64,000 bases of DNA from assembly GCA_964019335.1 (NCBI GenBank), contig OZ025729.1, positions 1 through 64,000 on the forward strand, given 5' to 3'. Within the stretch, counting starts at the first letter, position 1. Each line of letters opens with the position of its first letter. The position numbers and the translations under genes were made by a program. Shown in pieces: positions 1,203-60,058 of the stretch. The DNA is from Diplonema japonicum. Its lineage: Eukaryota > Protista > Euglenozoa: Diplonemea. The notes below the pieces were generated by a model. That model did not search any database. It was not told the DNA's origin and was given only the letters and a program-made list of their open reading frames with translations.

Positions 1203-1241
1203 CAATAAAGTACAGAAACTGTAGCTTTAGAATCGTTGGTG
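1203..1241 (-). ncRNA. Spliced-leader (mini-exon) sequence: SL RNA gene, orphon or retroposed SL
   Basis: Minus strand reads (C)ACCAACGATTCTAAAGCTACAGTTTCTGTACTTTATTG followed by GT. It is 39 nt long, and the 3' 19 nt (CAGTTTCTGTACTTTATTG) match the conserved kinetoplastid/diplonemid SL end. Confidence 0.85.
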
Positions 1242-37699: not shown

Positions 37700-38668
37700 T
37701 CAGGACACAACGCATTCACAACAGGATTTCAGCTGCTCCTGAATTGTTGGGGGGTCAGCAGACGTTCTCATGAACCCGGATCCGACAGATGTAGTCGGTT
37801 TCTTGAAATGAGTCAGGTCGACGGGGCCAAGGGACGGGCAGTACCCGAGAAAGTTATCCCCGACAATTCTGATACGGTGAAGCTGGCTGACATCAATTGC
37901 TGTGAGGGAAGTACAGCTGCAGCAACAACTGTCGCCGACAGACGTCACGTTGCTTAACGGGCTGAGGTCCAACTCCTTCAGAGATTTACAGCAAAGCAAA
38001 AAACCATCCCCGATAGAGGTAACGTTTCCCAACGGGCTCAGATCTACCGATTCCAGAGCGTCACAGTTTGCAAGGAAGTGGTTGTCGATCCTCCTGACGT
38101 TCCCACACAGGGATAAATCAACTGTTCGGAGGGATGTGCACTTATACAAGAAACAATATCCAATGGATCCAATGTTCCTCAGGTCTGTCATGTCCAGCGT
38201 CACGAGGTCCTTGCACCATGATAGGAACTTGTCCTCGATGACGGTCACGTTCTGCTCTGGGTCTGTGATTTTTAGGTTGCGAAGGTTGTCCGGGATGTGT
38301 AGCTTCTCCAGGAACAGCCTTGTCCTTGCAGACACGTTGATCTCTAACACGGTCTCGGGGTCTTCCTGCAACCGCAGTGTTATGTCTTCCCGCCTTCCGG
38401 ACAGCTCCTGCACGGCCACGCACATGCGGTTCTCCTCCTTGCACAACATTAACAGCTCGCACCCTTGTTCCATCCCCAGCTGGTGCGCCTCCTCCTCGCC
38501 GCGTGTGTGCTTATCAAGCATCTCGCCTTCCAGGTGCAAGGTGAACTCAACTCTCACCTCGGAAACTGTTTCCGCCTTCTTATAAAGGTCCCCCACCGTG
38601 TCTGCTTCATCCAATTCTATCTCGTGTGCTGCGCCAGAAGGTGCTTTAATGAACACAGTGAGGCTCAT
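37700..38668 (-). CDS. Ubl-LRR family protein A with C-terminal CaaX box
   Basis: N-terminal ubiquitin-like fold (MSLTVFIKAPSG..DTVGDLY..L.LEG), about six 25-aa LRRs (VDLSPLGNVTSIGDGFLLCCKSL), ends CCECVVS. Confidence 0.88.
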   Translation of the reverse strand: MSLTVFIKAPSGAAHEIELDEADTVGDLYKKAETVSEVRVEFTLHLEGEMLDKHTRGEEEAHQLGMEQGCELLMLCKEENRMCVAVQELSGRREDITLRLQEDPETVLEINVSARTRLFLEKLHIPDNLRNLKITDPEQNVTVIEDKFLSWCKDLVTLDMTDLRNIGSIGYCFLYKCTSLRTVDLSLCGNVRRIDNHFLANCDALESVDLSPLGNVTSIGDGFLLCCKSLKELDLSPLSNVTSVGDSCCCSCTSLTAIDVSQLHRIRIVGDNFLGYCPSLGPVDLTHFKKPTTSVGSGFMRTSADPPTIQEQLKSCCECVVS

Positions 38669-38696
38669 TTTTTTTTTTTTTTCTTCTTTTGGGTGG

Positions 38697-38930
38697 AGTC
38701 CTAACTTGACCCCTAAGTTTCCAAAATGCTCAAAGTCCACCCCCTAAGTCTTCAAAACGCTCAGATCCCGCCCCCTAAGTTTCCAAAGTGTTCAAAGTCC
38801 GCCGCCTCAAGTTTTTAAATGTCCTAACTAGGCCCCTCACTAAGGGGACCAAATTTGAGCATTTAAAAACTTAGGGGTCAAAGATAGACCTTGAACAGTT
38901 CTCATACTAAGGGGGTGGGTTTTGAGCATT
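38697..38930. repeat. Fold-back element with about 30-bp tandem subterminal repeats
   Basis: cccctaagtttccaaaatgctcaaagtcc repeated about 4 times, then inverted copies (tttgagcatttaaaaacttaggggtcaa). Confidence 0.75.
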
Positions 38931-39075: not shown

Positions 39076-39912
39076 TCAGGCTAGATCTTCCAATAGTGCA
39101 CAGAAGTCGCGTCCCCTGCTCACGGGGGGGAGCTGGCTGGTGTCGATCGAGTGGAAGCAGTGGCCTAGGAAGTTGTCCCCGACGCTGCGCAAGCTCTTCA
39201 GGTGGCGCAGGTTCAAAGGCTTCAACGAGACGCAGTTCGTCATAAAATTGCTCCCGATGACGGTTACCTTTTTCAAAGGTGTGAGGTCGATGTGCTTCAG
39301 TGCACCGCAGTTAGCAAGGAAGTGGTGCCCGACCTCCGAAACGTTCTGAAAAGGTGTAAGGTCAACAGACAGCAATGACCCGCATCTGTTCAGAAAGCAA
39401 GGGCCGACGGACTTCACGGACTGCAGCTCGGTCAGGTCCACAGTTGCGAGGTCGCACCAGGACAGAAAGTTTTCTTCGATTCTCGTTATTCTCCCGTCAG
39501 GGTCTGCCACCCGGAGGTGCCGCAAGCCTCGAGGGAGCATATCCTTCCACAGCTGCAGCGTGCTCACCCCATCAACGACGCCTACCACCAACACAAGGTT
39601 CGGGTCCTCCTTCACTCGTAGTGCGATCTCTGCAAGCCGCTCGCGCAGGTCCAACACCGAGACCCACATGACGTCTGTCCGGAGTTGCATCACCAGCTCG
39701 CATCCTTGTTCCATCCCCAACAGCTGCACCTCCTCCTGGCCACGTGCGTGTTTATCAAGCACCTCGCCTTCCAAGTGCAGGGCGAATGCTCCTTCGTCAA
39801 CCGCAGCAACCTCTGCAGCCTTGCTGTACAGATCCTTCACTGTGTCGGGGCCGTCGAGCTCCACCTCATGTGTTGTGCCTGACACCGTCTTGATGCACAC
39901 GGCGAGGCGCAT
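39076..39912 (-). CDS. Ubl-LRR family protein B
   Basis: Close paralogue of A (LHLEGEVLDKHARGQEEVQLLGMEQGCEL) with 4-5 LRRs. Confidence 0.88.
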   Translation of the reverse strand: MRLAVCIKTVSGTTHEVELDGPDTVKDLYSKAAEVAAVDEGAFALHLEGEVLDKHARGQEEVQLLGMEQGCELVMQLRTDVMWVSVLDLRERLAEIALRVKEDPNLVLVVGVVDGVSTLQLWKDMLPRGLRHLRVADPDGRITRIEENFLSWCDLATVDLTELQSVKSVGPCFLNRCGSLLSVDLTPFQNVSEVGHHFLANCGALKHIDLTPLKKVTVIGSNFMTNCVSLKPLNLRHLKSLRSVGDNFLGHCFHSIDTSQLPPVSRGRDFCALLEDLA

Positions 39913-41574: not shown

Positions 41575-42363
41575 TCAACAAGGCCAATATATGCAGTCTG
41601 ACATTCTTTTTTTTTTTTTCTCTCTCTGAAGTTTTAAAATTTTTAAAAAGATTGTCCCCCTGGTAGCCAAAAATGGCTTAAGTATCTTCTTCTTCTTCTT
41701 TCCATTAAAAGTGGTAGGGGTCTTCTTTTTCCCGCATTCTACTCCCTGCTGGGAACCTTGGGGGGGGGGGGGGGGGGGGAGAGGGGTGGGGGTGAGACAG
41801 GGGGATAGCGATATTGTGATAGGCCCTTCGCGTGTCTGGACGAAAGGAGAGTAGGTCACCTTCGCCTCTCTCAGCATACGACGGGACGCGATCCAAGATG
41901 GGTGGTCATGATTTTTATCTGAAAGATACACTACATGCGTGATGCCAAACTCGATTATTATTTTCGCGCACTCGTGACAGGGGAACAGCACAACATACAT
42001 TGTCCCATCCTCAATGCACCGTGTGTGGCAGTTGGCAATCGCATTCACCTCAGCATGCACAACATACAGGTGTTTCGTTTCCAGCATGCTGTGGCTTACA
42101 GACAGCTCGGACTTATCCTTGTCACCTTTCTCCCAAGGGAAGGCTTCGTCACCACAGCCCTTGGGGAAGCGGTTGTGGCCGATCCCCACAATCCTCTTGT
42201 CTTTGTCCACAATGCAGGCCCCGACCTGCCTGTTCGGGTCCCTGCTTCGAAGGCTGGACAGCACTGCCACAGACATGAAATATTCATCCTGTGCCATGTA
42301 GTTGATGTGTGGGCCAGTAGTCTTCTGGCCAGCAGCAGCGAGGGTCCACATGTTGCGGCGCAT
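41575..42363 (-). CDS. DCTD: Deoxycytidylate (dCMP) deaminase
   Basis: YFMSVAVLSSLRSRDPNRQVGACIV, IGHN, HAEVNAI and PCHECAK zinc motifs. The true C-terminus is uncertain because of the G homopolymer at about 41760-41780. Confidence 0.92.
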   Translation of the reverse strand: MRRNMWTLAAAGQKTTGPHINYMAQDEYFMSVAVLSSLRSRDPNRQVGACIVDKDKRIVGIGHNRFPKGCGDEAFPWEKGDKDKSELSVSHSMLETKHLYVVHAEVNAIANCHTRCIEDGTMYVVLFPCHECAKIIIEFGITHVVYLSDKNHDHPSWIASRRMLREAKVTYSPFVQTREGPITISLSPCLTPTPLPPPPPPQGSQQGVECGKKKTPTTFNGKKKKKILKPFLATRGTIFLKILKLQREKKKKRMSDCIYWPC

Positions 42364-42984
42364 CGGGTTCTGCAATCTGTATAAAAATAATTTGATAAAT
42401 TTCGGGTGTGTGGAGTGGGTGTTCACAAATAAAAAAAAGAGTTACTTTTCTTTTGATCAGGAGGGGACAAAAAAAAGGAGAAAAGAAAATTGCATGGTGT
42501 CCCCTTCACATCAAAGCACTGAGCTCAGTGTTTGGGCTTAAGAAGGCACATGATGAGCTAAAGGACTACACCACTACAGTGACACGACCTCAAAGCGTAC
42601 AGTGCAGTTGGGAATACCCCGATGCCCCCTCAAACAGCCGTGCCATCACCGCAGACTATGCTGTATTGCCTGGACCTCCACAAGCCGCTGCCAAGTGAGT
42701 CCCTTCTTAAGTCTGAAGCTGCTGTAAGAGGCTTTCCCCCTTTTTACATTCTGTGGTATGTGCTGAGACGTACACACATATGACAGGAGGCCGGTACTCC
42801 TGGAGCGAACCATCAGCGCAAGTCCTGCCCCCGTTTGCATTCCCCTCCGAGGTGCGGGTACTGAGAAAAGTAGAAGCAGCAGCCCCCAAAAGTTTGAAAT
42901 GGGGAGAGGGGCCACAGAAGCAACCAACACCAACTGGAGAGTATGTTGCAGGAGGCATACTTCATTGGCACAGGGCCACAGAGT

Positions 42985-45635: not shown

Positions 45636-46780
45636 CTATCGCCGGAAAGAATAATGAAAATAACGGAACGAAGTGAAGTAGGAAAAGAGAAAAGACGGCC
45701 TGGTCGCCAGGAAGTGCTGGTTCAGATGCATCGGCGGACGCAGTTTAACGTCATACCCGGGACCTAGGTAGGGGGTGGTTTGGCTCGAGGAGAAGAGTGG
45801 TCTCCTGTCATAGCCGTGTGCCGTCGGGCCCCCAAGATGTTGAAGGGTATGCACCCTTGACTTGGCCTTGGCGGGGAAGGCTGACCTTCCACAGCGTGCT
45901 GAGTATTTCTGGATGCGACCCACGATGTATCGCATCCTTGCAGCCTTCTCCGTGAGCAGGTCTTGATCGTCGAGGGGACCTATGAGTGACCGGCGGGTGG
46001 TCTGCTCATAGTCTGAGAAAATGTTTCTGTACTTTATTGTGAACAACAAAGACATATAGTCATTAAGAAAAAAGAATTCATATTGTCCCTTTCACCACTT
46101 TGCCTCAGCAATGCCGACCACAAAGAATGTGTGAGATCGACATTCTTTTTTTTTAAACTAAATACTGTAAATGAAAAATTACTGGAAAGAAAAAGATCCG
46201 GACTTCGAGGCTTCCAGTGATTTTCCCCTCCGTTATTACTCTTTATTCTTATTCCCTCTCGCAACCAGGGGCGAAGGGAAGATAATAATAACCTCAGCTT
46301 GCTAATTTCTAACGGGTGCCTTCTCACCTTTTGGGATCATTTATTTATTCTCTTCTCTTCCTGAAGATGTCGCTCCCTTCCTCTTCCTCTTCCTTTTCCA
46401 CATGCACCGTGTCTCTTTGTGTGAGGATCTGTGGTACTTGACAGACTCTCACCAATCGTCTTAGTGGCTCCATTTCCAGGGTGATTGTGACTACTGCTCT
46501 GTGCAATGGAACACACATGTCCTCTGTTCTGCATTCTTTCAGTGTGGTCACAGTGGCACTATTGAGTAGGATTTAGTCGGGTCTCGTTGATGCTGTACTA
46601 GTTATGTATGACGGTGGTGCCTCCAGCCCCTCCTTTCATGCTTGCATTGCTGCTGCATCGATCCAGTGGCTCTGGAGGGTGGTCTTCCTACTGGCGACTC
46701 GGCTACCATGGTGTTGAAGTCACCCGCCACGATGATTCATATGTCCCCAAGGAGAGCCCTGGCCTAGAGTAAACCAGCAG
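45636..46780 (-). mobile_element. Degenerate non-LTR retrotransposon remnants (APE endonuclease fragment and a possible post-RT fragment)
   Basis: IIVAGDFNT at about 46710-46738, followed by TRPD*ILL and HRAVVTI resembling APE motifs. The GC-rich fragment at 45636-46020 is less certain. Confidence 0.55.
46023..46039 (+). other. SL 3' fragment (retroposed SL relic)
   Basis: GTTTCTGTACTTTATTG, the last 17 nt of the SL, ending exactly at the splice junction and followed by tgaacaacaaagacata. Confidence 0.7.
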
Positions 46781-46795
46781 CATACCCCACCTTCG

Positions 46796-46879
46796 TCAGG
46801 CTCCCCACCGTCTCCTTCCCTGGCACTTCCACATCGTGAACCTGCCTCCCATCTTCACGAACACTGTCATATCGTTCAT
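46796..46879 (-). pseudogene. Truncated Ubl-LRR family start
   Basis: MTVFVKMGG, then after a frameshift HDVEVPGKETVGSL, matching the start of gene C. It is cut off next to the retroelement remnant. Confidence 0.7.
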
Positions 46880-47333
46880 TTTTTTTCTTTCTTGTGCTTC
46901 TGTTCTGTTTCCCTTACAAAACGAAGAAATATAAAGGAAAGTGAATCGAGACAAATGATAGCTGGCTCCATGCACCTCTTTCTCACTCCTCATTTTTTTT
47001 TTTTTTTAAACGCCTGAGTACTCATAACCGTACTGGTGTTCTCATTCCACCAGCTTTGTGGTTATTTGGCACTTTACACTTTTTCTTTTTTTATTCATCT
47101 TTTTGCCCCCCTCCCTAGTGTTTTTGGCTGGGGACCCCATAAATAGCCAGACCTCAGTACCCTTTCTTTTTTCTTTAATCACATAACAAGGGTGGGGAAA
47201 AGTTTGTTTGGAGGGGTCTTTTTTTTTTTTTTCACACTGCTGCATCTGCCTGACTTCCGGCGGGTTGCTCGGGTTGTTGTGGTAGGGGTGTCTCTATAAG
47301 AACACCATCGCTTCTTTGGGGATCCTCATGGTT

Positions 47334-49271
47334 TTACTTTGTTAAGAAGCTCCCCAGGATGTGGTTTTTGGGAAGTGATGAAGCCGTGATGTTTTGCAAT
47401 CTCGGGCACTTAGACAGAAAGTCATCACCAATTGAGGTAACGTTGGTGAAGGCTCCCAAATCCACGGCTTGCAATCCAGAGCATGAATACAGGAAGCCAC
47501 AGCCAATGGTGGTAACGTTGGTGAAGGATGTCAAATCCACAGTTTGCAGTCCAGAGCATAAATACAAGAAGTCATCGCCAATGGTGGTGACGTTGGTGAA
47601 GGCGGTCAAATCCACGGTTTGCAATCCATTAGTATGTGCTCTTTTCCTTTTCAATCGATTGCTATATACGGTTTGCAATCCAGAACATAAAGACAGGAAG
47701 CCACAACCTATGGTGGTAACGTTGGTGAAGGCTCTCAAATCCACGGCTTGCAATCCAGAGCATGAATACAAGAAGCCATTGCTAATTGAGGTAACGTTGG
47801 TGAAGGCTGTCAAATCCACGGCTTGCAATCTAGAGCAGCAATGCAGGAAGCGATTGCCAATTGAGGTAACGTTGGTGAAGACTGTCAAATCTACGGTTTG
47901 CAAACCAGAGCATGAAGACAGGAAGTCATCGCCAATTGAGGTAACGTTGGTGAAGGCTGTCAAATCCACGGTTTGCAATCCAGAGCATAGAGACAGGAAG
48001 TAATCGCCAATTGAGGTAACGTTGGTGAAGGCTCTCAAATCCACGGTTTGCAATTCAGAACATGAAGACAAGAAGCCATGGCCTATGGTGGTGACGTTGG
48101 TGAAGGCTGTCAAATCCACAGTTTGCAATCCAGAGCATTGAGATAGGAAGCGATTGCCAATTGAGGTAACGTTGGTGAAGACTGTCAAATCCACGGTTTG
48201 CAAACCAGAGCATGAAGACAGGAAGCCATTGCCAATTGAGGTAACGTTGGTGAAGGCTGTCAAATCCACAGTTTGCAATCCAGAACATGAAGACAGGAAG
48301 TGATCGCCAATTGAGGTAACGTTGGTGAAGACTGTCAAATCCACGGTTTGTAATCCAGAGCATGAAGACAGGAAGCCACGGCCTATGGTGGTGACGTTGG
48401 TGAAGGCTCTGAAATCCACGGTTTGCAATCCAGAGCATGAATACAGGAAGCGATTGCCAATTGAGGTAACATTGGTGAAGACTCTCAAATCCACAGTTTG
48501 CAATTCAGAGCATGAAGACAAGAAGCCACGGCCTATGGTGGTGACGTTGGTGAAGGCTGTCAAATCCACAGTTTGCAAACCAGAGCATGAAGACAGGAAG
48601 CGATCGCCAATGGTGGCAACGTTGGTGAAGACTGTCAAATCCACGGTTTGCAACATTGACTGTGACAGGAAGCCATCGCCGATAGAAGTAACATTGTTAA
48701 GGAAACTCGCATCCCCGAAGCTGATGGACGATGAGCCAAGGAGGCTAAGGAAGTTGTCACCAATGGTGTTGAGCCCCAACTTCAAATCGAGAGACTCCAG
48801 GGTGTCAAGCCGGGAAATGCTACCACGAAGAAAATTATCACCAATGTCCCTGACGCGGTTTGCAGAGTCGGTGACAACAAGGCTCCGAAGTCCAGAAGGG
48901 AGGTCCACCTGCCCAATGCACACCGCCTTGTCTGTCGAATCTCCCACATCGACTTCAAGAACCAGCTCAGGGTCTGCCACCACAAGCCTTTCAAGCTCCA
49001 GTTTCGCTTCAGGACTCTCCTTCAGCTCAGTCAGCCCTACCACTGTGCCAGGAACCACATCGACAACAGCCCCCTCCACAAGCTCGATCCCCTGAACATC
49101 TTCATCCCCAAACCTGCTCAGCACCTTTCCCTCCCAAACCAGTTTGAACATCCTTTCAAGCAAACCAGCAGCACACACCGCTTTCCTGTACAGGCTTCCT
49201 ACTGTCTCTGTCCCAGCCACCTCCACATCGTGAACCCCTGCTTTCGTCTTCACAAACACTGTGATGCTCAT
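47334..49271 (-). CDS. Ubl-LRR family protein C with 17 near-identical 25-aa LRRs
   Basis: 645 aa. N-terminal Ubl, then a 75-bp tandem array encoding LQTVDLTAFTNVTSIGxxFLxxCSG. Confidence 0.93.
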   Translation of the reverse strand: MSITVFVKTKAGVHDVEVAGTETVGSLYRKAVCAAGLLERMFKLVWEGKVLSRFGDEDVQGIELVEGAVVDVVPGTVVGLTELKESPEAKLELERLVVADPELVLEVDVGDSTDKAVCIGQVDLPSGLRSLVVTDSANRVRDIGDNFLRGSISRLDTLESLDLKLGLNTIGDNFLSLLGSSSISFGDASFLNNVTSIGDGFLSQSMLQTVDLTVFTNVATIGDRFLSSCSGLQTVDLTAFTNVTTIGRGFLSSCSELQTVDLRVFTNVTSIGNRFLYSCSGLQTVDFRAFTNVTTIGRGFLSSCSGLQTVDLTVFTNVTSIGDHFLSSCSGLQTVDLTAFTNVTSIGNGFLSSCSGLQTVDLTVFTNVTSIGNRFLSQCSGLQTVDLTAFTNVTTIGHGFLSSCSELQTVDLRAFTNVTSIGDYFLSLCSGLQTVDLTAFTNVTSIGDDFLSSCSGLQTVDLTVFTNVTSIGNRFLHCCSRLQAVDLTAFTNVTSISNGFLYSCSGLQAVDLRAFTNVTTIGCGFLSLCSGLQTVYSNRLKRKRAHTNGLQTVDLTAFTNVTTIGDDFLYLCSGLQTVDLTSFTNVTTIGCGFLYSCSGLQAVDLGAFTNVTSIGDDFLSKCPRLQNITASSLPKNHILGSFLTK

Positions 49272-49395
49272 TTTATTTTCTTCTGCTCTTATTTATATCC
49301 TCCCAATCCCCCTGAGCACGAAATTCTATTGAAGAATACCTTTTTCTTTTTTTTTTTTTTTTTTTTTTTTTTTGGTATACTATTTGTTGAAATAC

Positions 49396-49497: not shown

Positions 49498-50009
49498 ATC
49501 GGCCAGACTGACCAGACTGACCAGACTCGAAAATTTTCTGCAATTTTTGACACACCTGCAAACACTTTTTTTTCAAATATTTTTGGACAATGATTTTTTT
49601 TTTTTTTTTTTTTTTTTTTCTTCTTCTTCTTCTTCTTCTTTGTACCAGACATGCACAGCTACTCTGGTGCACTGCAGCTGCAGGTATGTACATATGTCTG
49701 GAAATGTTGTATTTGGATGTAACCCGGCTGTGGTGATCAACGTGGAATGCAGAAGAAGCTACAACCCAGCCGCGGTGAGAGATATATGAGTTAAAGGACC
49801 TGCACAAGACTACTTGATTACAGGGGGTACACCACAGCCGAGTTGTAGCTTCTTCTGCGGTCTGTGTTGTTTCCATAATCACTGTGGCCAAGCTGTAGCT
49901 TCTTCTGTGTTCCATGTCATGTCCTTAATGTGTGCAGTGTTCAGCTCAACCCCATCCAGGGCATCCCAGGTAACCAGATTCTGCTCAAAAAAAGGTAAGG
50001 AATTCCTTA

Positions 50010-50043
<34 letters not shown>

Positions 50044-51013
50044 CCTATTGTCCTTAATCACCACAGCCGGGTTGTAGCTTCTTCTGCATTCTGTGTTGTG
50101 TCCTTAATGTGTGCAGTGTTCAGCTCAACCCCAGCCAGGGCATCCCAGGTAACCAAGATTCTGCTCATGCAGGGGTGGGTCGTTTTGTTCCCTTCCACCA
50201 AACTGAATAGTCGGAACTTGGTGGAACGGCAGAACTGGAACTTGGCAGACAGGGCTCTAACCTATTTTTTTTTTTTTTTCTTTTTTTTTTTCCCCTTTTT
50301 TTTTTTTTTCTTTTTTTTTCCTCTTTGCATCATCAAGGTTGAAAGTGGTGACTATATCACCACAACACTGACAGCACAATATTCCATGTCGTGTCCTTAA
50401 TGTGCAGTGTGCAGCTCAACACCAGAGCATCTGCAATACGTTCCTCCACTCAGGTGCTACCAGTGATGACCAATGTGGAGGTCAACCACGAACAACACAT
50501 CTGATGTACTTCTTATATTTCCATGTTATCCCCACCACCTGAAAAAGGAAAGTAAACTCTTCACACTCACCATTGAAAGGATGGCTTCAAGACAGATATT
50601 GAAGATGTAGAGGGCATGTGCAGGATAGGTGTAGGAACAGACCATGGAAAAAACACACATCATGTAAAGATGTGCTTGGCTTGTCTGCCAACTGCTCCTC
50701 AGTCAGGACCCACTCCACCCTCCAGGGGAGACCACCAAGCAATGTCACAATGTCATCAACTACATTGTTAAAGATAAAACCTGTTGCCTTCCTATCCCTG
50801 AGGGTGAAAAAGACCAGCATTGGGTCTGTCTTCATCACCACTGCTTTGCCTCTCTCCCTCATCTCTACCCATCTGCACATAACTCTCAAACAAGCATAGG
50901 CCTCCAAAACGTGAATTGGCTCACCCTGCTGTGTCCACTTGAACTGGCCAACCTCACCACAGTCGACTGCAGAATGAAGGCCCCTCCCTTCATTGAGGCA
51001 TCACTCCACAGGG

Positions 51014-52121
51014 CAGTGTTGGTCAGTCCCATCCCATCCCCTAAAACGGAATACGGGCCTGGATGGGACTCACAGGACTCCACGGGACGGGACTCGACAG
51101 GACTCACGGGACTCACAGGACTCATGGGACTCTCCCCAACACTGTCATTATTTTTGATAGTTTTGCAACTTTTTTTTTTTTTTTTTTTTTTTTCCCTTTG
51201 GAAAATGGGGAAAAAAAAAAGAGAAAAAAATCCTTGATTTTTTTTGACATACATAATGTGTTTACCTTTTTTTTTTTTTCCTTCTTTTTTTTCTTGTCTT
51301 CTCACATTTTTTCACACACCTAAGCCAAGCTGTTGTTTCTGCTTTCTGCATCAAATGTTGTATTTTGATGTAATAGAAAAGGGGGGAAATAATAAATAAT
51401 ATGTACAAGAGGAGGGTATGTTTATACAACCTGTGTAAACAGATTGGTTCCTTGCTTTCAGCACCATGCCCCTAATGTGCAATGTACAGCTCAACCCCTG
51501 CATTGCACTGCCTGTTTGTTGCACAAATTTTCATGTTATCCCCCCCCCCCCTACCTGAAAATAATAGAAAGGAGATAAATATATGAGTTAAAGGAGGCCG
51601 GTGTTGGCAGCACCCTGCACAAGAACTGTCTACTTGATTACAGGGGGTGCACCACAGCTGAGTTGTAGCTTCTTCTGCGTTCTGCATCGTTTCCTTAATC
51701 ACCATGGCCAGGATGTAGCTTCTTCTGCATTCTACATCATGCCCTTAATCACTGCAGCCAGGTTGTAACTTCTTGCATTCCGTGTCATTTCCTTAACCAC
51801 CACAGCCGGGTTGTAGCTTCTTCTGTGTTCTGCGTTGTGTCCTTGATCACCACAGCCGAGTTGTAGCTTTTTGTGTTCTGTGTCATTTCCTTAATCACAA
51901 TGGCCAGACAGCCAGGTTGTAGCCTCTTCTGCATTCCATGTCGTGTCCTTAATGTGTGTGGTGTTCAGCTCAACCCCAGCCAGGGTGCCCCAGGTAACTA
52001 AGATTCTGCACTTGTGTGGTTTGCTCAGTGATGACAGATAAGGAGGTCAACAGTGAACAACACATCTGATGTTTTTCTTATATTTTCATGTTATCCCCAC
52101 CACCTGAAAAAGAAGATAAAA

Positions 52122-52171
<50 letters not shown>

Positions 52172-52571
52172 AACAGTCAGCACCCCTATGCACACTGAAA
52201 TTTTATTGTTTTTTTTTTCCTTTTTTTTTTTCCTTTTGTATATTGTGCACCAGGAGGTGCATTGTGACACCTGCTTTTCCCTGTGCAGCATAGTGGTACA
52301 TGTTATAAAACATGTGCTGTGTTGTGCACCCTGTGTTGCATACATCATGTGTGTCGAAAATTTGCAGTGTTGGGGTGGTTTGTAGGCCAACACTGCCCAT
52401 CCCTTTTTTTACTTTTTTTTTTTTGCATTGTACTTTTCTTGCAAAGGCCTCTTTTTAATATTTTTTTCAAAGCAGTCCCCTAAGTCCCCTCCAGACCCCT
52501 GAAAATTTCAGGGGACTCCTGTCCTGTCCCTTGGAGTCCCCTGAGTCCCTTGAGGGTCTGGACCAACACTG
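51014..52571. mobile_element. Non-autonomous DNA transposon with CAGTGTTGGTC TIRs and a 7-bp TSD, inserted at the RT/RNase H junction
   Basis: cagtgttggtc (51014) and gaccaacactg (52561-52571), with cacaggg on both sides. Excision restores EFEWEETLWSDASMK in frame. Confidence 0.88.
51650..51955. repeat. Tandem array of about 50-bp units (R1 subunit)
   Basis: cacagcc(g/a)ggttgtagcttcttctg..ttc....t..tccttaatcac, about 6 copies. Confidence 0.85.
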
Positions 52572-54352
52572 CACAGGGTCTCTTCCCATTCAAACTCTAC
52601 CTGCCTGACATCCACTGGGCTGTTTTCCACAATTGCAGCAATGACCCACTGCACATCCTTCATTGCTGCAGCCCACCATGTCACCCTGCTCTCCCAGCTT
52701 TCTTCACCACTACCTAGCTTCCTTGTATGCCTTGAGATCCACTGTTTCATGTGAATCACCTTCAAATGACTGATGTCAAGGGCCCTCATACCCCACATGA
52801 TGGCCCCTAGCACCTTCCATGTGGCCCTCAGTGTAAATTTTGTTGGTGCCATGAGGAACAATGCTGCTGCATCTGTAAACTTGCTTACCCATGACTGCTT
52901 CAGCAACACCAGCTTCTCCTTCAGGTCCAGCTGCCTCCCTCTGCTTTGGACAATGGTCTTCTTCCTTGAAAACAGCACCACAATGTACAGCTGTCTGCTT
53001 CAGCACACTAACCAGGCCAGCCACATCCTCCTTCTGTTCTGCATACAGGACAAAGTTGTCAATAAAACAAGTGCACCAGCCTTCATCCTTCGTGCCCTCA
53101 CACAAGCCTCACTTGCCAACAATGCTGCCACACTCTGTGCCACCCACACACTCCATGACCAGCCCATTGCCAGCACAACCAACCAGTACCATCCTGCAAC
53201 TGTACACAATGCAAAATACTCACAGAGGGGCCAAGCTCCAATCTGGTAGAACCATGATTTCCCATCCAGCTGCACAACATACTCGTTTTTCCTAAAGTAA
53301 TTCTCAATTACTCAGGGAGTACCACCTTGAAGAACAGGTGCGAGAAAGGGTCAAGGGAGGACCAGAAAGCTTTTTCTTTCATCCCTCTCTGCTTTTGTTT
53401 TACTTTTTATTCATACTTTAAAGGGGAAAGGGAAACTCAGTTGCACCCCATAACCCACAGGCACCTTCTGAAGCAGTCCCAGGTATAGGTACTCACCACC
53501 ATCTCCTTCACATCAGCAACAGATGACAGATCAACTGATGGAGGGTCCCTCTGTGCATTGCCCACCAGCAATGTATCCACCACCAGCCTCCTCTTCCCAC
53601 TTGGCTTTGGAACTGTGAACACTTTCACCATGTTTTTCACCTTCTCATCTGACCATCCCTTCTTCTCCAGCACACCTGCCTCCTCCAGCTGCCGACTTCT
53701 TTCCTGGCACCCCTACTGGCCAGAAATCTTCATGAGTGGGTAGAAACATGAGGAACAATGGCCTTCATTGCTGCCATGAACTTGGCATACTTCAGCACCA
53801 CAAACATCTTTCTCCCCTTCACAGCTTCCACATGCTCCAGCACCTTGTCCTTCCACTCTGCAGTCACCTCAACCTCCTCTTCTGTCTTCTTCTTGCCACA
53901 ATTGGTCTTGCCTACCTTGACAGTGAACCTTAACCTTAGGGACGTCACTGTGTTCTTGACCACAACAATCTGCCAGCTGTAGGACATCTGAGAAGCACAG
54001 TGCCATCAACCACATCTGTGCATCCAGCCCCCTGACCAGGCTCTTCACCTCCAGCATCATCAGCACCTTTGCTTGTGTCTGTGGCTGCCTTGCCCCTTGG
54101 CACTCCATTGAGTCAATGTACCACCTTAGGCCCTGTAGCTTCTCTTCCTTGCTGAACAATGCCACTGCTGAGGTTATGGAACGAGCATATCCAGCCCTTG
54201 CTTTTTTTTTTTTTTTTTAAATAAACCTCTTTTTTTTTTGGCTGGCCAAGCCCTCTCCTTTCTTTTTCTCCCTCCCTGGCCTCTGATCAACCCCAGGAAC
54301 CATGAGCCTCCTTGTGTAGAGGAGGGTGCTGACCAGGTGGTCAATCTCCAGA

Positions 54353-56445
54353 CAGTGTTGTTATGGGAAAAAACCCAGGGGGGTGGGGGGGCAAAAAAAA
54401 TTTTTTTTTCTAGGGACCCTCACTCATTTAGCACCCTCAAAACAGACTTTTTTGGAAATTTTTAGCCAAAAAAAAAATTTTTTTTTCCCAGGGGACCCCA
54501 AACTTGGGGTCATTTTTGACCCCAAAATTTTTTTTCTGGAAAAAGCCAAAAATCATGAAATTTATATTAAAAACACCTTAAAAACCCATTTCTGCAAACC
54601 AAAAAGTTCAGAAAGGTGTTTAGGTGGAATACACATCTCTAAACTATATTCTGAAGTAAAAAGTAAGTAAAAATCCAAAAGTTTCAGGGGGGTAACTCAT
54701 TCTCATAACAATGGGAGGGCAAAAAATAATTTTTTTTTTTTTGAACACCCAATTTGGTCCTGAAAATGGAATTCTGAACAGCCAATAGAAAGTTTTGACC
54801 CCACTTGGACTAAAAAAAATCTTTCAAAAATCACTTCAGGAATTTTCCTTAGGGTCTAAATGGCCACCTGAAAATCACAAAATCAAGCTTCATTTTAGAA
54901 TGGTATTTTTGGAATTTTGGCCTAATTTTGGGTGATGATAAGCAAAATGCTCCTTGAAGTAGGTTTCCCAGCTGTGGTTACCTAATTGAATTTTTTTTTT
55001 CTTCAAGGAATCAACTTTGTTCTGAAAATTTAAGATTTATATCATTCTAGCACCTTGTAACTCACTTTTCAGGAAACACACAATTTCACACATTTGAATT
55101 TATTCTTTAGTTTTTTTCTGAACCTATTTAATTTTTAAACCTAATAAAGAATGTGTAAATCTCCTAATCAAGATTTTTTAGTACCAGTGTTGCCAAAATG
55201 GGTTGGAAATTAAAGTACCCAGCTGTGGTTACTTAATCAAAAAAGAATTTAATAGTCCATTTAACCATGTATTCAAACCTTTTACCCTTACTTGGTTTTT
55301 TTTGTGGAATTTATTTCATTTTTTCGGTTCTTTGCCAGCAATAGCAGTCTTTCCTCTTGGCTGCAATCTCCTTCACCTCCAGTACTTTGCCAACAATAGC
55401 AAAGTGTGTCAGTGTGGCACCTTCTTCACCTCAATCCTAGGACCTTTCAACCCAATATTGCCAGCCATGCCCCCTTTCCACCCAAGGTAGGCTATCAGGT
55501 AGTCTTTTCTGACAGATTTGCTGGTTCTATTGGGGTGTCTTATTGGGTTAGGTTATTTTTTAAAACAACCTGCCAATAAAGTACAGCAAAAACAGGGGGG
55601 GAAATACAAAGAATGAGAAAGGTAAGTTATAAAGGAAAGAAAAATGACAGATGGACCATTACTAGGCCAAGTACAGGTGCCCTTTGTGAAAAAAATCTTA
55701 TTTTCTGAGGTAAAATATCACTTTTCAGGTGTTTTTGACAATTTCTTTTGTGAGGAAAAAAATTCTTTGGGCACTTTTTTTTTGACACATGACCATCTCA
55801 CTTTCACTATTAGCCTCATTGAGGTCTAGAATAGGTATTTTTGAGGGAAAAAAAATTTCTTTTTGAGAAAAAATCAATCTAAGGGTGTTTTTGGCCACTT
55901 TTTTTGGGAGGAAAAACAATTTTTTTGGACACTATTTTTTTTTTTTTTTTCCAGCACTGCACCCAATAAAGTACAGTAAAAAAAAAGGGGGGTAAATACA
56001 AAGAATGAGAAGGGTAAGTCATAAAGGAGAGAAAACCAACAGATAGACCATTACTAGGCCTGATATAGGTACCCTTATGGAAAAAAATCAATTTTTCTGA
56101 GGTAAAAAACCACTTTTCAGGTGTTTTTGACCACTTGTTCATGTGAAAAATAATTTTTTTTGGGCACCTTTTTTTTTTGACCCCCAAACTTCTCACTTTC
56201 ACCCCACTTCACTAAAAGCCTCTATTAAGGCCTAGGATAGGTACTTTTGAGAAAAAAAAATTTTTTTTTTGAAAAAAAATCAATTTTTGGGTGTCTTTGA
56301 CAACTTTTTTTGGGTGGAAAAAAATTTTTTTTGGACACTATAAAAAAAATTTTTTTTGCCCCCCCCACCCCCCACCCCCCTGGATTTGCCCCCCCATGCC
56401 CCCCTGAAAATCTTGGGGGGGCAACCCATTCTTGTAACAACACTG
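54353..56445. mobile_element. Second CAGTG-terminated non-autonomous DNA transposon, AT-rich with phased A/T tracts
   Basis: Ends cagtgttgttatggga and tcttgtaacaacactg, with inverted subterminal ggggtggggggg-caaaaaaaa blocks. No TSD visible. Confidence 0.7.
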
Positions 56446-57090
56446 CTATCAGGTAGTCTTTTCTGACAGATTTTCTGGTTCTATTGGGGTGTCTTGTTGG
56501 GTTAGGTTATTTTTTAAAACAACCTGCCAATAAAGTACACGGGGGGGAAATACAAAGAATGAGAAAGGTAAGTTATAAAGGAAAGAAAAATGACAGATGG
56601 ACCATTACTAGGCCAAGTACAGGTGCCCTTTGTGAAAAAAATCTTTTTTTCTGAGGTAAAATATCACTATTCAGGTGTTTTTGACAATTTTTTTTGTGAG
56701 GAAAAAAATTCTTTGGGCACTTTTTTTGACCCATGACCATCTCACTTTCACTATTAGCCTTATTAAGGTCTAGAATAGGTATTTTTGAGGGGAAAAAAAT
56801 TTTTTTTTGAGAAAAAATCAATTTAAGGGTGTTTTTGGCCACTTTTTTTGGGAGGAAAAACAATTTTTTTGGACACTTTTTTTTTTTTTTCCAGCACCCC
56901 ATGCACCCAATAAAGTACAGTAAAAAAAAAGGGGGGTAAATACAAAGAATGAGAAGGGTAAGTCATAAAGGTGAGAAAACCAACAGATAGCCCATTACTA
57001 GGCCTGATATAGGTACCCTTATGGAAAAAAATCAATTTTTCTGAGGTAAAAAACCACTTTTCAGGTGTTTTTGACCACTTGTTCATGTGA
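55490..57090. repeat. About 390-bp A/T-tract-rich repeat units in a higher-order duplication
   Basis: Units marked by ccaataaagtaca at 55574, 55964, 56528 and 56908. Segment 55491-56147 is repeated at 56445-57090. Confidence 0.9.
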
Positions 57091-57668
57091 AATAACTATT
57101 TATTGCCAACAAATAATGAGTCATTATTTAACTCGAGTTCCCGAATTTTTTGCACGAGGGCCTGCAGGGCCCGAGTGCAAAAAAACGGGTAACGAGTGTT
57201 AAATAATGGCTCATTTGGCGGCAAGTAAGTCGTTTTATTTCACTCTTCGTCATTTGAGTCACTCACTCTTCACTGCTTTCACTGCTGTTTTTTTTCACAC
57301 AGGTCAGCTTTTTGGGGATTTTCCTAAGGTAATACAGGGTAGCTATTTCGCCGTGGCATTTAAAGGGGAAGTAAGGCACTTATTCCCACTTTTAAGGGCT
57401 GGAATGGCCTCAGATGGCCAAAAATAGTCAAAATACCCCCACCCCAAAAAAATTTTTCAAGGGGTTGGGTGCATTTTTTTCCACGACAAGACCCATTTTT
57501 TCACTCTGAAGGGCCATTATTTAACTGCAAAATCTCATTATTTAACTAGTTAAATAATGGCGATTTCGCGTTAAATAATGGCCGTTTCGCGTTAAATAAT
57601 GGCCATTTCGCGTTAAATAATGAGGCCCCTAGTGAGTGAAGAAAATGACGAAGAGTGAAATAAAATAA
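57086..57668. mobile_element. Palindromic MITE-like element (CpG intact)
   Basis: Long hairpin centred on gggcctgcagggccc (about 57110-57216). ttatttcactcttcgtcatt pairs with aatgacgaagagtgaaataa. Three ttaaataatgg..tttcgcg tandem units. Confidence 0.72.
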
Positions 57669-57752
57669 TTTTTTTTGGGCACCTTTTTTTTTTGATGTGC
57701 AATGTGCTTTCATTCACTGGTATACCTTACTTAGTGTGGGAACTCCTTGAAT

Positions 57753-59018
57753 ATGAGCATCATGGTGTACATCCGAACGCCTTCTGAGAGGTATGAAGTT
57801 GAAATAAGCAGTGGTGAGACAATGCAGTGTTTGTATGAGAAGGCTGCCAGTGCCGCTGAGATGGAACCAGAGTGCTTTTGCTTGAGACACGAGGGGGCCG
57901 AGTTGGACAGGAACAGCACAGAAGAGGTACAGGACACAGCCCTTGTGGAGGGGTGCGAGGTGGTAGTGGCAAGTGTTGACAGCATTCATGTTGGTGTGGA
58001 AGATTTAGGGTCACAAACATTTCGCCACATGCTTCAAAAGCGACTGGGCTCCGACCCTGGCCTGCTTCTTACAGTAGACGTGTCCGGGCCGTGTGTGTTG
58101 GAACTTTGTGAAGAAGATCTTAAAAAGGTGAAGCACCTGAGATTAACGGACCATTCGGGGACTGTGACCTGTCTGAAGGCAATTCGTTGCAGTACCCTTG
58201 TCACTGCCAACTTCGACATGCCCAATGTCACCAGTATTGGGGATGGGTTTCTTAAGTCTTCTGTGAATCTCACTTCCCTGAACCTCACTGCAATGAGGAG
58301 AGTGTCCCTGATTGGGAAGGGCTTTCTCGAGTATTGTCAGTCGCTCACGGTGGTGGACCTTTCACCCCTCTGTGGCTTGTCTGAGATCCCAGAGTGTTTC
58401 ATGGCAGGCTGTGTGTCTTTGCAGTCCATCGACCTAGCACCCTTCAAGAAGGTTTCAAGGATCCGTGGGTGGTTTTTATCTGACTGCAGGTCGTTGAAGG
58501 AGATCGACACCACACCCATGCTGGACACAAGGGGTGTAGGCTGCTTCTCGTGTCACGAGGTCTTAGTGAGTGTTTTACGTTTTGTGTGGAGATTCCTCAA
58601 CTGTTGTTTCACCTTCGACTTTGAGCCCCTCAGCTTGGGGCTCACACCCGGTCAAGACAGAAAAGAGATCGGCCGTGACTTCATGAGCTACTGTTCCTCC
58701 CTCACTTCTGTTGACCTCACAGGCCTCCGGGGTGTGTGGCTCGACAAGGCTTGCTTTTTGAGAGGCTGCACACAACTTAAGCAGATAGACCTTACCCCAC
58801 TTAAAGGCTCACGCATCGGTGACATCGATGGTGCACTGGCGTCTGAAGTGAGCCGCAGACAAGCACGCCGCACCATGATAAACAGGATTAACTTTTTTAT
58901 AGCTTGTGCTCAGATTCTATGCATCGACACTTGGGTGACGCGAATGAATGTGGTGACTGTGGCTTGGATCTTGACTGTGACTTGGATCTTGATGATGGTG
59001 CACCTGGAGTGTTTTTAA
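57753..59018 (+). CDS. Ubl-LRR family protein D with hydrophobic C-terminus
   Basis: MSIMVYIRTPSERYEVEI..LYEKA..LRHEG..LVEGCEV Ubl, 25-aa LRRs, and a TM-like tail VVTVAWILTVTWILMMV. Confidence 0.88.
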   Translation: MSIMVYIRTPSERYEVEISSGETMQCLYEKAASAAEMEPECFCLRHEGAELDRNSTEEVQDTALVEGCEVVVASVDSIHVGVEDLGSQTFRHMLQKRLGSDPGLLLTVDVSGPCVLELCEEDLKKVKHLRLTDHSGTVTCLKAIRCSTLVTANFDMPNVTSIGDGFLKSSVNLTSLNLTAMRRVSLIGKGFLEYCQSLTVVDLSPLCGLSEIPECFMAGCVSLQSIDLAPFKKVSRIRGWFLSDCRSLKEIDTTPMLDTRGVGCFSCHEVLVSVLRFVWRFLNCCFTFDFEPLSLGLTPGQDRKEIGRDFMSYCSSLTSVDLTGLRGVWLDKACFLRGCTQLKQIDLTPLKGSRIGDIDGALASEVSRRQARRTMINRINFFIACAQILCIDTWVTRMNVVTVAWILTVTWILMMVHLECF

Positions 59019-59095
59019 CAGTCTATTGAGTGTTTTCTTTTTTCTTTTTGTATCCCCCCTTTCTTTTTAAAACTAATATATCCAAATCAAAAGAC

Positions 59096-60058
59096 ATGAG
59101 CATCACGGTGCACATCCGGACGCCTGACGGTGTGCACAGCATCGACTTGGATGGCTGCGACACAGTTAAGACACTGCATGAGAAAACAGCCACGGCCACT
59201 GGGTTCAAGACCCACAAGTTCTCCTTAGACTGGGAAGGTGCCACACTTCAAAGCAGCAACGAACCCGTGTGGCAAAGCGGGCTGGCGAACGGGAGCTGCT
59301 TGGCACTGGTGAAAACAGTCAAACTACATATAACAGCCGCGGACTTGTTGAAAGAAACGCAGGCCATCAAGGAACAAGCGATAGATGCCCCTGGCATGAC
59401 CCTGGTGATCGATGCATCGTCACAAGGCCAAAACACAACGCTGATGATAGATGGGTCTTCCTTCCCAAATGAGGTCGCAAGGGTGGTCTTCACGGACCAT
59501 GGCACGGTGGATACGATTGGTGATAATTTCTTGTGCGATACATCAGTGATGGAGGTGGAGTTCATGGGCTTTACAGGTGTCTCGAGACTGGGAACGAATT
59601 TTCTCCGCGGCAACAAATTTCTTCAGGGCCTTGACCTTGGGCCACTGTCTAATGTCAAATTTATCGGGTGTGGGTTTCTCAGTCGTTGTACTAGGCTGGC
59701 TTCTCTCGTCCTGCCTCCCCACGCGATCCACATCAACATGGAGTTCCTTTATGGGTGTTGTGCCCTCACCACACTTGACCTGACCCCACTCCGAGCTGTC
59801 GAGGTTATTCAGCACAGATTCATGGCAGGCTGCTCTGGGCTCACCCACCTTGACTTGACACCCCTTGCCTCAGTACAGCATATTGGAGGTTATTTCCTCT
59901 GTAATTGTGTGGGGCTGCGTGCTTTGGACATCTCACCCTTGAAGGATGTCGGCTTTATTGGGAGTGACTTTCTCGGTGGGTGTCCTAGGCTGAAAGAAGC
60001 CCAGGTTTTACAGGCCCATTGGAAAGGTCTCAGTTTGTGGTCGTCCTGGCCTCCTTAG
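59096..60058 (+). CDS. Ubl-LRR family protein E
   Basis: MSITVHIRTPDGVHSIDLDGCDTVKTL..LDWEG Ubl and LRRs LDLTPLxxVxxIGxxFLxxCxxL. Confidence 0.88.
   Translation: MSITVHIRTPDGVHSIDLDGCDTVKTLHEKTATATGFKTHKFSLDWEGATLQSSNEPVWQSGLANGSCLALVKTVKLHITAADLLKETQAIKEQAIDAPGMTLVIDASSQGQNTTLMIDGSSFPNEVARVVFTDHGTVDTIGDNFLCDTSVMEVEFMGFTGVSRLGTNFLRGNKFLQGLDLGPLSNVKFIGCGFLSRCTRLASLVLPPHAIHINMEFLYGCCALTTLDLTPLRAVEVIQHRFMAGCSGLTHLDLTPLASVQHIGGYFLCNCVGLRALDISPLKDVGFIGSDFLGGCPRLKEAQVLQAHWKGLSLWSSWPP

Follow-up and report, generated by a model that had tools for sequence, protein, structure and literature searches.

A family of ubiquitin-like leucine-rich repeat proteins with hypervariable repeat positions in Diplonema japonicum, a candidate intracellular recognition repertoire

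Why should a protist gene carry 17 nearly identical tandem repeats whose differences concentrate at the same few codons of each repeat, and leave the third base of two of these codons untouched throughout? The question is raised by a minus-strand gene in the first 64,000 nucleotides of contig OZ025729.1 of Diplonema japonicum (assembly GCA_964019335.1; this whole stretch is referred to as the window), whose predicted product joins an N-terminal ubiquitin-like (Ubl) head to a rod of leucine-rich repeats (LRRs) of the BspA type (Table 1). According to our sequence searches, the gene is an intact, somewhat older member of a Ubl-LRR family of at least 150 genes in D. japonicum. We consider it reasonably probable that this lineage-specific family, in which a non-cleavable Ubl head is joined to a BspA-type solenoid, constitutes an evolving repertoire for intracellular recognition.

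When the translation of the open reading frame (ORF) is set in register, the 17 units, the order of their variable di-residues and the codons behind them are exactly those described in the first-pass annotation of this DNA. After I(G/S), units 1-17 read DG, DR, RG, NR, RG, DH, NG, NR, HG, DY, DD, NR, NG, CG, DD, CG and DD, with the first variable codon always of the form NRT (GAT, AAT, CAT, CGT or TGT; 17/17 units) and the second always NRC (GGC, CGC, CAC, TAC or GAC; likewise 17/17). The second variable pair that the annotation had placed after FL is also present in the aligned units and reads SQ, SS, SS, YS, SS, SS, SS, SQ, SS, SL, SS, HC, YS, SL, YL, YS and SK from unit 1 to unit 17. Unit 1 comprises 24 amino acids (aa), the others being built on a 25-residue unit, and Tandem Repeats Finder detects the 75-bp period in two arrays (47428-47628 and 47668-48653), with 85 % matches. 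Upstream of the array, the degenerate LRR units of the linker/cap region still show IGDNFL motifs at aa 143 and 170.

The clustering of variation at few codons is real. Among units 2-16, on which all within-gene diversity values are based, codons 8-9 show a non-synonymous diversity (pN) of 0.46 and a synonymous diversity (pS) of 0, and codons 12-13 a pN of 0.31 and a pS of 0.12, whereas the remaining 21 codons show a pN of 0.06 and a pS of 0.25. At the nucleotide level, the per-site difference between units amounts to 0.54 at positions 1-2 of codons 8-9 versus 0.11 in the scaffold. Units 7 and 11 illustrate this well, since they differ at only 1 of 63 scaffold bases, yet at 2 of the 4 bases at positions 1-2 of codons 8-9. 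Every subfamily varies at the same codons, in agreement with the original claim that variation is concentrated at fixed positions of an LRR scaffold, and within each protein, again in every subfamily, the scaffold is nearly invariant.

The first-pass annotation had stressed the NRT-NRC pattern with its constant third bases, and had considered a per-repeat code possible. The constancy of the third bases at codons 8-9 is less remarkable than it appears, because 12 of the 25 codons are without synonymous variation in this gene and codons 8-9 offer only about 1.2 synonymous sites, so that few silent differences are expected there. Across the family, 98 % of 334 units have NNT at codon 8 and around 90 % have NNC at codon 9; however, the scaffold codons 10 (TTC) and 14 (TGC) are equally fixed at the third base, and of 14 scaffold codons that can be compared between the two best-sampled subfamilies, about 9 end in the same base in both (manual count from codon tables). 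Third-base identity therefore reflects inheritance. We read the NRT-NRC pattern as the probable result of descent from one ancestral unit, with selection retaining only amino-acid-changing substitutions at these codons, and not as a code.

Evidence for such selection comes mainly from the paralogues. In 20 of the 20 family genes tested, pN at codons 8, 9, 12, 13 and 15 exceeds scaffold pS, and the ratio of variable-site pN to scaffold pS reaches 4-7 in the main subfamily; in the gene studied here, it amounts to a modest 1.1 for the five codons and 1.85 for codons 8-9. Positive selection is therefore well supported by sequence comparison for the family and weakly for this copy, and the diversifying selection initially proposed for this gene holds for the former much better than for the latter. 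At the variable sites, D, N, H, Y, R, G, S, C and W predominate, an alphabet typical of binding surfaces, with Asp accounting for 54 % at position 8 and aliphatic residues being nearly absent.

These data also bear on an explanation which does without recognition, namely that unconstrained surface positions drift on a scaffold homogenised by concerted evolution, the proteins sharing one structural or scaffolding role and forming no repertoire. The low ratio of this particular gene would suit it, as would the large share of codons without synonymous variation, given which the constant third bases say little. Nevertheless, we regard it as rather unlikely, since the ratio is above 1 in all 20 genes and far higher in the main subfamily, and since neutral drift cannot lift diversity above the synonymous level when whole units are homogenised. 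The restricted and biased alphabet argues in the same direction, and drift would hardly account for a family of at least 150 copies in which, across 14 genes of the main subfamily, 245 units carry 100 distinct variable words.

The arrays of these 14 genes show three-unit higher-order repeats, recurring unit types, block duplications, and conserved first and last units. Block duplications between conserved terminal units are the expected trace of unequal crossover inside arrays and suggest that the reshuffling by unequal crossover or gene conversion envisaged in the first-pass annotation does take place in the family.

Considering that tandem arrays are prone to assembly errors, it matters that the published assembly is based on 102x PacBio HiFi reads with Hi-C scaffolding (PMC13598402) and that the array, at 1.3 kb, lies well within the length of one HiFi read. 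In addition, read contigs from four short-read runs of three studies reproduced multi-unit pieces of the gene with zero differences, variable codons included (47339-47486, 47519-47765, 47573-47744, 48379-48533 and 48624-49009). None of the contigs from the four runs spans the whole array, and the unit count thus rests on the HiFi assembly. Joints in the read layout that skip 607, 765, 791 or 1176 bases were considered as alleles with fewer units, but none of these lengths is a multiple of 75 and they were taken as cross-mapping of paralogues. The concern that the array might be a collapsed mis-assembly of several paralogues was not confirmed.

Pfam LRR_5 (PF13306) matches five stretches of the protein with 173.8 bits (cut-off 27.7; E 1.7e-51), and the sequence matches in the PDB are 4gt6 and 4fs7, the alignment with 4gt6 being in the same repeat register. 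The repeat core fits the BspA/TpLRR class V-T-x-I-G-x-x-A/F-F/L-x-x-C-x-x-L-x-x-I/V-x-L. The TpLRR unit has 23 residues, and the unit found here, TNVTSIGxxFLxxCSGLQTVDLTAF, has 25. An AlphaFold2 model built on 20 paralogues gave a mean predicted local distance difference test score (pLDDT) of 81, with values above 90 through the array, 80-90 in the linker/cap region and 36-60 in the head; compared by Foldseek, it resembled 4fs7 best (E 8e-11, template modelling score 0.60 on the target), followed by 4gt6 and 4h09.

Within each unit, the model places a strand of three residues at T-V-D of LQTVDL, another of two residues at S-I, and a bridge at T1. Invariant hydrophobic residues occupy nine positions per unit (V3, I6, F10, L11, C14, L17, V20, L22 and F25), and Q, T and D, the exposed positions of the canonical LxxLxL strand, do not vary either. 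The variable positions x8, x9, x12 and x13, to which other subfamilies add x15 and x16, all fall within the ten-residue arc from G7 to x16 that leads from the S-I strand to the LQTVDL strand. Judged from this arrangement, the variable residues are probably exposed and stacked as one stripe along the rod.

A straight rod bearing one variable cluster per unit might also function as a reader, each unit recognising one element of a linear polymer, be it a nucleic acid or an extended peptide, through its di-residue, as in transcription activator-like effectors (TALEs), pentatricopeptide repeat proteins or PUF proteins. The very regular scaffold and the limited set of recurring unit types in shuffled order would be compatible with such a per-repeat code; however, we think it improbable. 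The repeats form an LRR solenoid and not a helical repeat, and the 8-9 pair is strongly linked to residues 12-13-15 (mutual information 2.0 bits versus 1.15 in shuffles), as whole-unit duplication gives. Moreover, the protein is acidic (isoelectric point 4.6 overall and 4.95 for the LRR part), without a conserved Lys or Arg in the scaffold that could meet a phosphate backbone. A TALE-like nucleic-acid code, the analogy drawn in the first-pass annotation, is unlikely because an acidic LRR presents mostly Asp at one of its variable positions; the reading of extended peptides is still conceivable.

The assignment of the head is based on the family. A profile of 12 paralogue heads matched polyubiquitin (E 8.5e-6), the Dsk2 UBL (E 9e-4) and the parkin UBL (E 0.013) in the PDB, with the UBLs of Rad23 and midnolin following more weakly, and 11 of the 12 heads matched Pfam ubiquitin (PF00240; best E 2.1e-6), whereas the head of this gene alone scored 14.5-17.7 bits, i.e. 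below the cut-off of 25.4. No C-terminal Gly-Gly was found at the end of the beta-grasp, the sequence VVDVVPGTVVG at the equivalent place continuing into the linker. Starting at residue 1 and being without a terminal Gly-Gly, the domain is thus an integral head, and not a cleavable or conjugatable modifier. The Pfam search revealed LRR families and the weak ubiquitin match only, i.e. no NB-ARC, NACHT, F-box or TIR domain, and FNIP (PF05725) gave no match at E up to 0.1.

No signal peptide, transmembrane segment or anchor was detected by sequence and hydropathy, no dedicated predictor having been used; the maximum 19-residue hydropathy is 1.54, with the peak located in the Ubl and not in the tail. 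By sequence, the protein should be soluble and intracellular.

A further explanation attributes the diversity to targeted mutagenesis, by a diversity-generating retroelement, a deaminase-driven process or a somatic assembly of cassettes as in lampreys' variable lymphocyte receptors (VLRs). The NNT/NNC codons resemble, family-wide, the AAY-derived codons of diversity-generating retroelements, and a gene of the cytidine/deoxycytidine monophosphate (dCMP) deaminase fold lies 5 kb away. A deaminase beside hypervariable LRR genes recalls the lamprey system. This deaminase is, however, a housekeeping dCMP deaminase (human DCTD, E 5e-42), on which ground an AID/APOBEC-like mutator was rejected. The ORFs of at least 90 aa between 49.5 and 57 kb contain no Pfam domain and no reverse transcriptase, the genes downstream are ordinary, and no template repeat was seen near the gene, though no specific search for one was made. 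Together with the scaffold codons 10 and 14, which are as fixed at the third base as the variable ones, the third bases common to two subfamilies, and the agreement of the read contigs with the assembly at the variable codons, this makes targeted mutagenesis very improbable.

Equally doubtful is an adhesin, exposed at the surface or secreted, of the kind known from Tannerella (BspA) and Trichomonas (BspA-like proteins), which would share the Pfam family and could make use of the N-x-S/T motif present in every unit, since the Ubl begins at residue 1, signal peptide, hydrophobic segment and anchor-like tail are missing as described above, and the N-x-S/T motif may simply represent the structural Asn position of the repeat.

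Searching the genome of D. japonicum with the whole protein yielded 145 places, and with the 150-residue head 150 scored matches among 277 candidates, which cluster on few contigs (C85, C91, C95, C93, C66, C114 and others). An exhaustive profile search with the head retrieved 165 proteins in 1.84 billion representatives, whereas an ordinary search of a 5.8-billion-protein database with the head region gave no match. The full-head proteins whose source was looked up were all D. japonicum transcripts, and one transcript protein is 100 % identical over 484 aa to genome contig C106. The family is thus transcribed and, on these data, appears to be restricted to this lineage. Another diplonemid, Flectonema neradi, has the same LRR type without this head.

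Outside the diplonemids, the nearest LRR arrays show 43-52 % identity, and Holosporales proteins are among them. The best of these outside matches (46-52 %) are bacterial and have the same 25-residue IGxxFLxxC unit with an equally uniform scaffold; some are proteins of Holosporales metagenome-assembled genomes (P0010, P0061), and one (P0001) lies on a 1.03-Mb contig. Such host-like LRR units in Holosporales could point to transfer, or to mimicry, between the symbionts and their host. In the two endosymbionts of D. japonicum, which belong to the Holosporaceae, LRR proteins are reported to be encoded next to genes for type VI secretion (bioRxiv 10.1101/719211). A scan of bacterial and archaeal species genomes yielded only ordinary gut BspA-like proteins of 26-37 % identity, which are uninformative on origin.

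The same LRR type also occurs behind other heads. On contig C6 (around 317-321 kb; L010, L020), 25-residue repeats with the same variable positions follow an N-terminal protein kinase (L020, Pkinase E 1.3e-36), and on contig C107 (around 216-219 kb; L025) the LRRs come after a different N-terminal part. The kinase-LRR fusion agrees with a recognition module that is combined with various output heads. Among the proteins, P0090 (932 aa) combines a canonical ubiquitin domain, a family-type Ubl near the N-terminus and another directly ahead of repeats of the same LRR type, and P0123, P0126, P0127 and P0140 (1000-2358 residues) contain 9-13 tandem copies of a domain matching the family head profile.

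We found no paper describing this Ubl-LRR family. The closest published precedent is given by the FGxxFN/FNIP LRR families of Cafeteria roenbergensis virus, Megavirus and Dictyostelium (PDB 6NYR), which are likewise large intracellular families with nearly identical repeats (PMC9525666). In their crystal structures, variability is highest at the two residues after FG, which run along the edge of the binding face, and the modules are also joined to varied heads, i.e. F-box in Megavirus and kinase in Polysphondylium, as compared with ubiquitin-like or kinase here. They differ in having 22-residue units, a double Phe spine and a shifted Asn ladder instead of 25-residue BspA-type IGxxFL units with a second and third variable pair; no ubiquitin-like head is described for them, and the passages considered report no selection analysis (PMC9525666).

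By hidden Markov model and fold, the repeats belong to the same family as the BspA-like/TpLRR proteins (PF13306; Tannerella BspA, Entamoeba; 4fs7, 4gt6, 4h09, 6mlx), in which the x positions of the IGxxAFxxC core vary, and very large expansions of these are found in some protists, e.g. 911 TvBspA proteins in Trichomonas vaginalis (PMC2843621). In contrast, BspA-like proteins are mostly surface-exposed or secreted, with 23-residue and less uniform repeats, whereas the present units are near-identical, 25 residues long, preceded by a ubiquitin-like head and cytosolic by sequence. BspA-type and FGxxFN expansions with a variable pair after Gly are thus of a known kind, and what appears to be new is the presence of a ubiquitin-like head, a scaffold of extreme uniformity and the diversifying selection that was measured.

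The three systems to which the array was originally likened resemble it in part only. Lamprey VLRs are alike in their LRR scaffold, the diversity at few positions per unit and the shuffled unit cassettes; they differ in being assembled somatically from flanking cassettes, in being secreted or membrane-bound, and in having LRRNT/LRRCT caps and variation on the concave sheet. Here, the diversity is germline and spread across many genes, the LQTVDL strand is invariant, the gene is complete in the germline assembly, and no LRR unit cassettes are found in its flanks; somatic assembly is further contradicted by the identical sequence in four runs. TALEs share near-identical tandem units differing at a di-residue, but consist of helical repeats of 33-35 residues wrapped around DNA, have a basic scaffold and follow a demonstrated code of one unit per base, none of which applies here. 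The LRRs of plant nucleotide-binding LRR proteins (NLRs) are comparable in the diversifying selection within large clustered families, and F-box-LRR (FBXL) proteins as intracellular LRRs that select targets for the ubiquitin system; both differ from the present proteins in LRR class and domain content, there being no F-box, NB-ARC, NACHT or TIR domain here. The integral N-terminal UBL followed by a substrate-binding module is found in the UBL shuttle/capture proteins (the UBL-UBA factors Dsk2/Rad23, and midnolin), in which, however, a UBA or Catch domain takes the place of the LRRs and single genes that of a family of at least 150 members.

Taken together, the recognition repertoire could operate as follows. 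The invariant hydrophobic residues would build the core of the solenoid, with the variable residues lining the rod as one stripe of around 80 Å in length. Arrays would grow and be reshuffled by duplication of units or blocks (unequal crossover or conversion), which would keep the scaffolds alike, and selection would retain amino-acid changes at the stripe. The stripe may bind proteins, different paralogues binding different partners, and the Ubl head may couple the bound partner to the ubiquitin-receptor machinery, most simply the proteasome, by analogy with the UBL shuttle/capture proteins. As drivers, one may speculate on partners in intracellular conflict, for example the two endosymbionts of the Holosporaceae, viruses or proteins derived from prey. 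A bolder version, to which we assign a low probability, is that the stripes of the different paralogues capture different foreign proteins (Holosporaceae effectors, viral proteins), that the Ubl head would deliver these to the proteasome or to autophagy receptors without ubiquitylation, and that the kinase-LRR fusions would be the signalling arm of the same system.

Several points weigh against such a repertoire. The ratio of variable-site pN to scaffold pS is low in this gene, and relaxed constraint could account for the variable sites of this copy taken alone; furthermore, repeats inside one gene are not independent, which makes pN/pS among them approximate. The exposure of the stripe is a prediction based on the hydrophobic pattern, the output of DSSP and the precedent of the FGxxFN repeats. 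The head model, with beta-beta-alpha at aa 2-34, is of low pLDDT, and Leu8 of the hydrophobic patch of ubiquitin is replaced by Lys, Glu or Gly in the family heads, as read manually from the alignments. Transcription is documented at the level of the family and not for this particular copy. Finally, coupling to the proteasome is pure inference on our part.

One unit of the array deserves separate mention, as unit 14 contains an in-frame insert (Table 1) that forms a basic loop including KRKR and is flanked by a 12-bp direct repeat. It is unique genome-wide except for one 21-mer with 1 mismatch, and was reproduced without differences by the read contigs 47519-47765 and 47573-47744. Its pLDDT is below 50 at aa 538-551, i.e. 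predicted disordered, and in the model it loops out of the solenoid. A mobile element or intron was considered and rejected, the insert being unique in the genome and in frame, with no GT..AG pair that would restore a unit.

With regard to its surroundings, the gene aligns by blastn with its closest paralogue (L002 on contig C103) at 88.7 % identity from -77 through the coding sequence, and no flank homology was found beyond -77. Long A-runs of the sense strand lie on both sides of the gene (46980-47010, 47215-47235 and 49341-49373), and the upstream stretch 49500-57100 contains many T-runs. Retroposition as the copying route is unsupported for this gene, as there is no spliced-leader copy at its 5' end and only 1 of 30 family loci has one.

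A spliced leader is common to Euglenozoa. A piece of its exon (around 38 nt, CCAACGATTCTAAAGCTACAGTTTCTGTACTTTATTG) is scattered over most contigs, frequently no more than a few kb from the contig ends, its 3' part occurring at 232 places genome-wide versus 0 in the control. In the window, copies are found at 1203-1221 (minus strand) and 46021-46039 (plus strand, 2 mismatches), and further ones in L031 and L032 near position 1501. In four aligned copies, the shared sequence ends right after TTATTG and the downstream sequence differs. The dispersed copies could be retroposed trans-spliced mRNAs or scattered leader genes.

Table 1. Positions in the window of the Ubl-LRR gene, its parts and neighbouring features. 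In a unit that starts at window position s, codon 8 occupies s-21..s-23 and codon 9 occupies s-24..s-26
Feature	Position	Strand	Remarks
Complete coding sequence	47334..49271	-	645 aa and stop codon; ubiquitin-like head, linker/cap, array of 17 LRR units, short tail; from ORF list
Ubiquitin-like (beta-grasp) head, aa 1-75	49047..49271	-	Begins at residue 1; without C-terminal Gly-Gly
Family-specific linker, N-terminal cap and 2-3 degenerate LRR units, aa 76-191	48699..49046	-	Kept across paralogues in alignment
Array, 17 units of 75 bp	47373..48698	-	Scaffold TNVT(S/T)IGxxFLxxCSGLQTVDLT(A/V)F; hypervariable codons 8, 9, 12, 13 per unit
Unit starts, units 1-9	48698, 48626, 48551, 48476, 48401, 48326, 48251, 48176, 48101	-	
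Unit starts, units 10-17	48026, 47951, 47876, 47801, 47726, 47597, 47522, 47447	-	
In-frame 54-bp insert in unit 14, aa 536-553	47613..47666	-	Adds YSNRLKRKRAHTN and a duplicated GLQTV
C-terminal tail PKNHILGSFLTK	47337..47372	-	No hydrophobic anchor
Upstream stretch aligning with closest paralogue, about 77 nt before ATG	49272..49348	-	Homology edge in sense-strand A-run
Frameshifted remnant of second family gene (head, MNDMTVFVK subfamily), immediately downstream	46690..46879	-	From three-frame translation
Ubl-LRR family gene, diverged older units, Met at about 38668	37700..38740	-	Pfam LRR_5 4e-14; MSLTVFIKAPSG..., then IGxxFLxxC units
Ubl-LRR family gene, diverged units	39076..39912	-	Pfam LRR_5 1.8e-8
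Ubl-LRR family gene, diverged units, Met at about 57753	57747..59018	+	Pfam LRR_5 2.5e-11
Ubl-LRR family gene, diverged units, Met at about 59096	59030..60058	+	Pfam LRR_5 5.8e-8
dCMP deaminase, housekeeping	41575..42426	-	5 kb downstream of the gene; human DCTD E 5e-42

Diplonemids rank among the most abundant and most diverse heterotrophic protists of the sea and, to our knowledge, almost nothing is known on how they recognise intracellular bacteria, viruses or prey. The regular scaffold of the proteins described here, with its 25-residue units, nine fixed core positions and 4-6 freely variable surface positions, is attractive for protein engineering. For the organism itself, at least 150 genes in which one predicted stripe of a regular solenoid bears clear signs of diversifying selection make a strong candidate recognition system, and the fusion to a Ubl head suggests a direct link between recognition and protein degradation. 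If the capture of foreign proteins proved true, the family would represent a natural, germline-encoded capture-and-degrade immune system in a protist.

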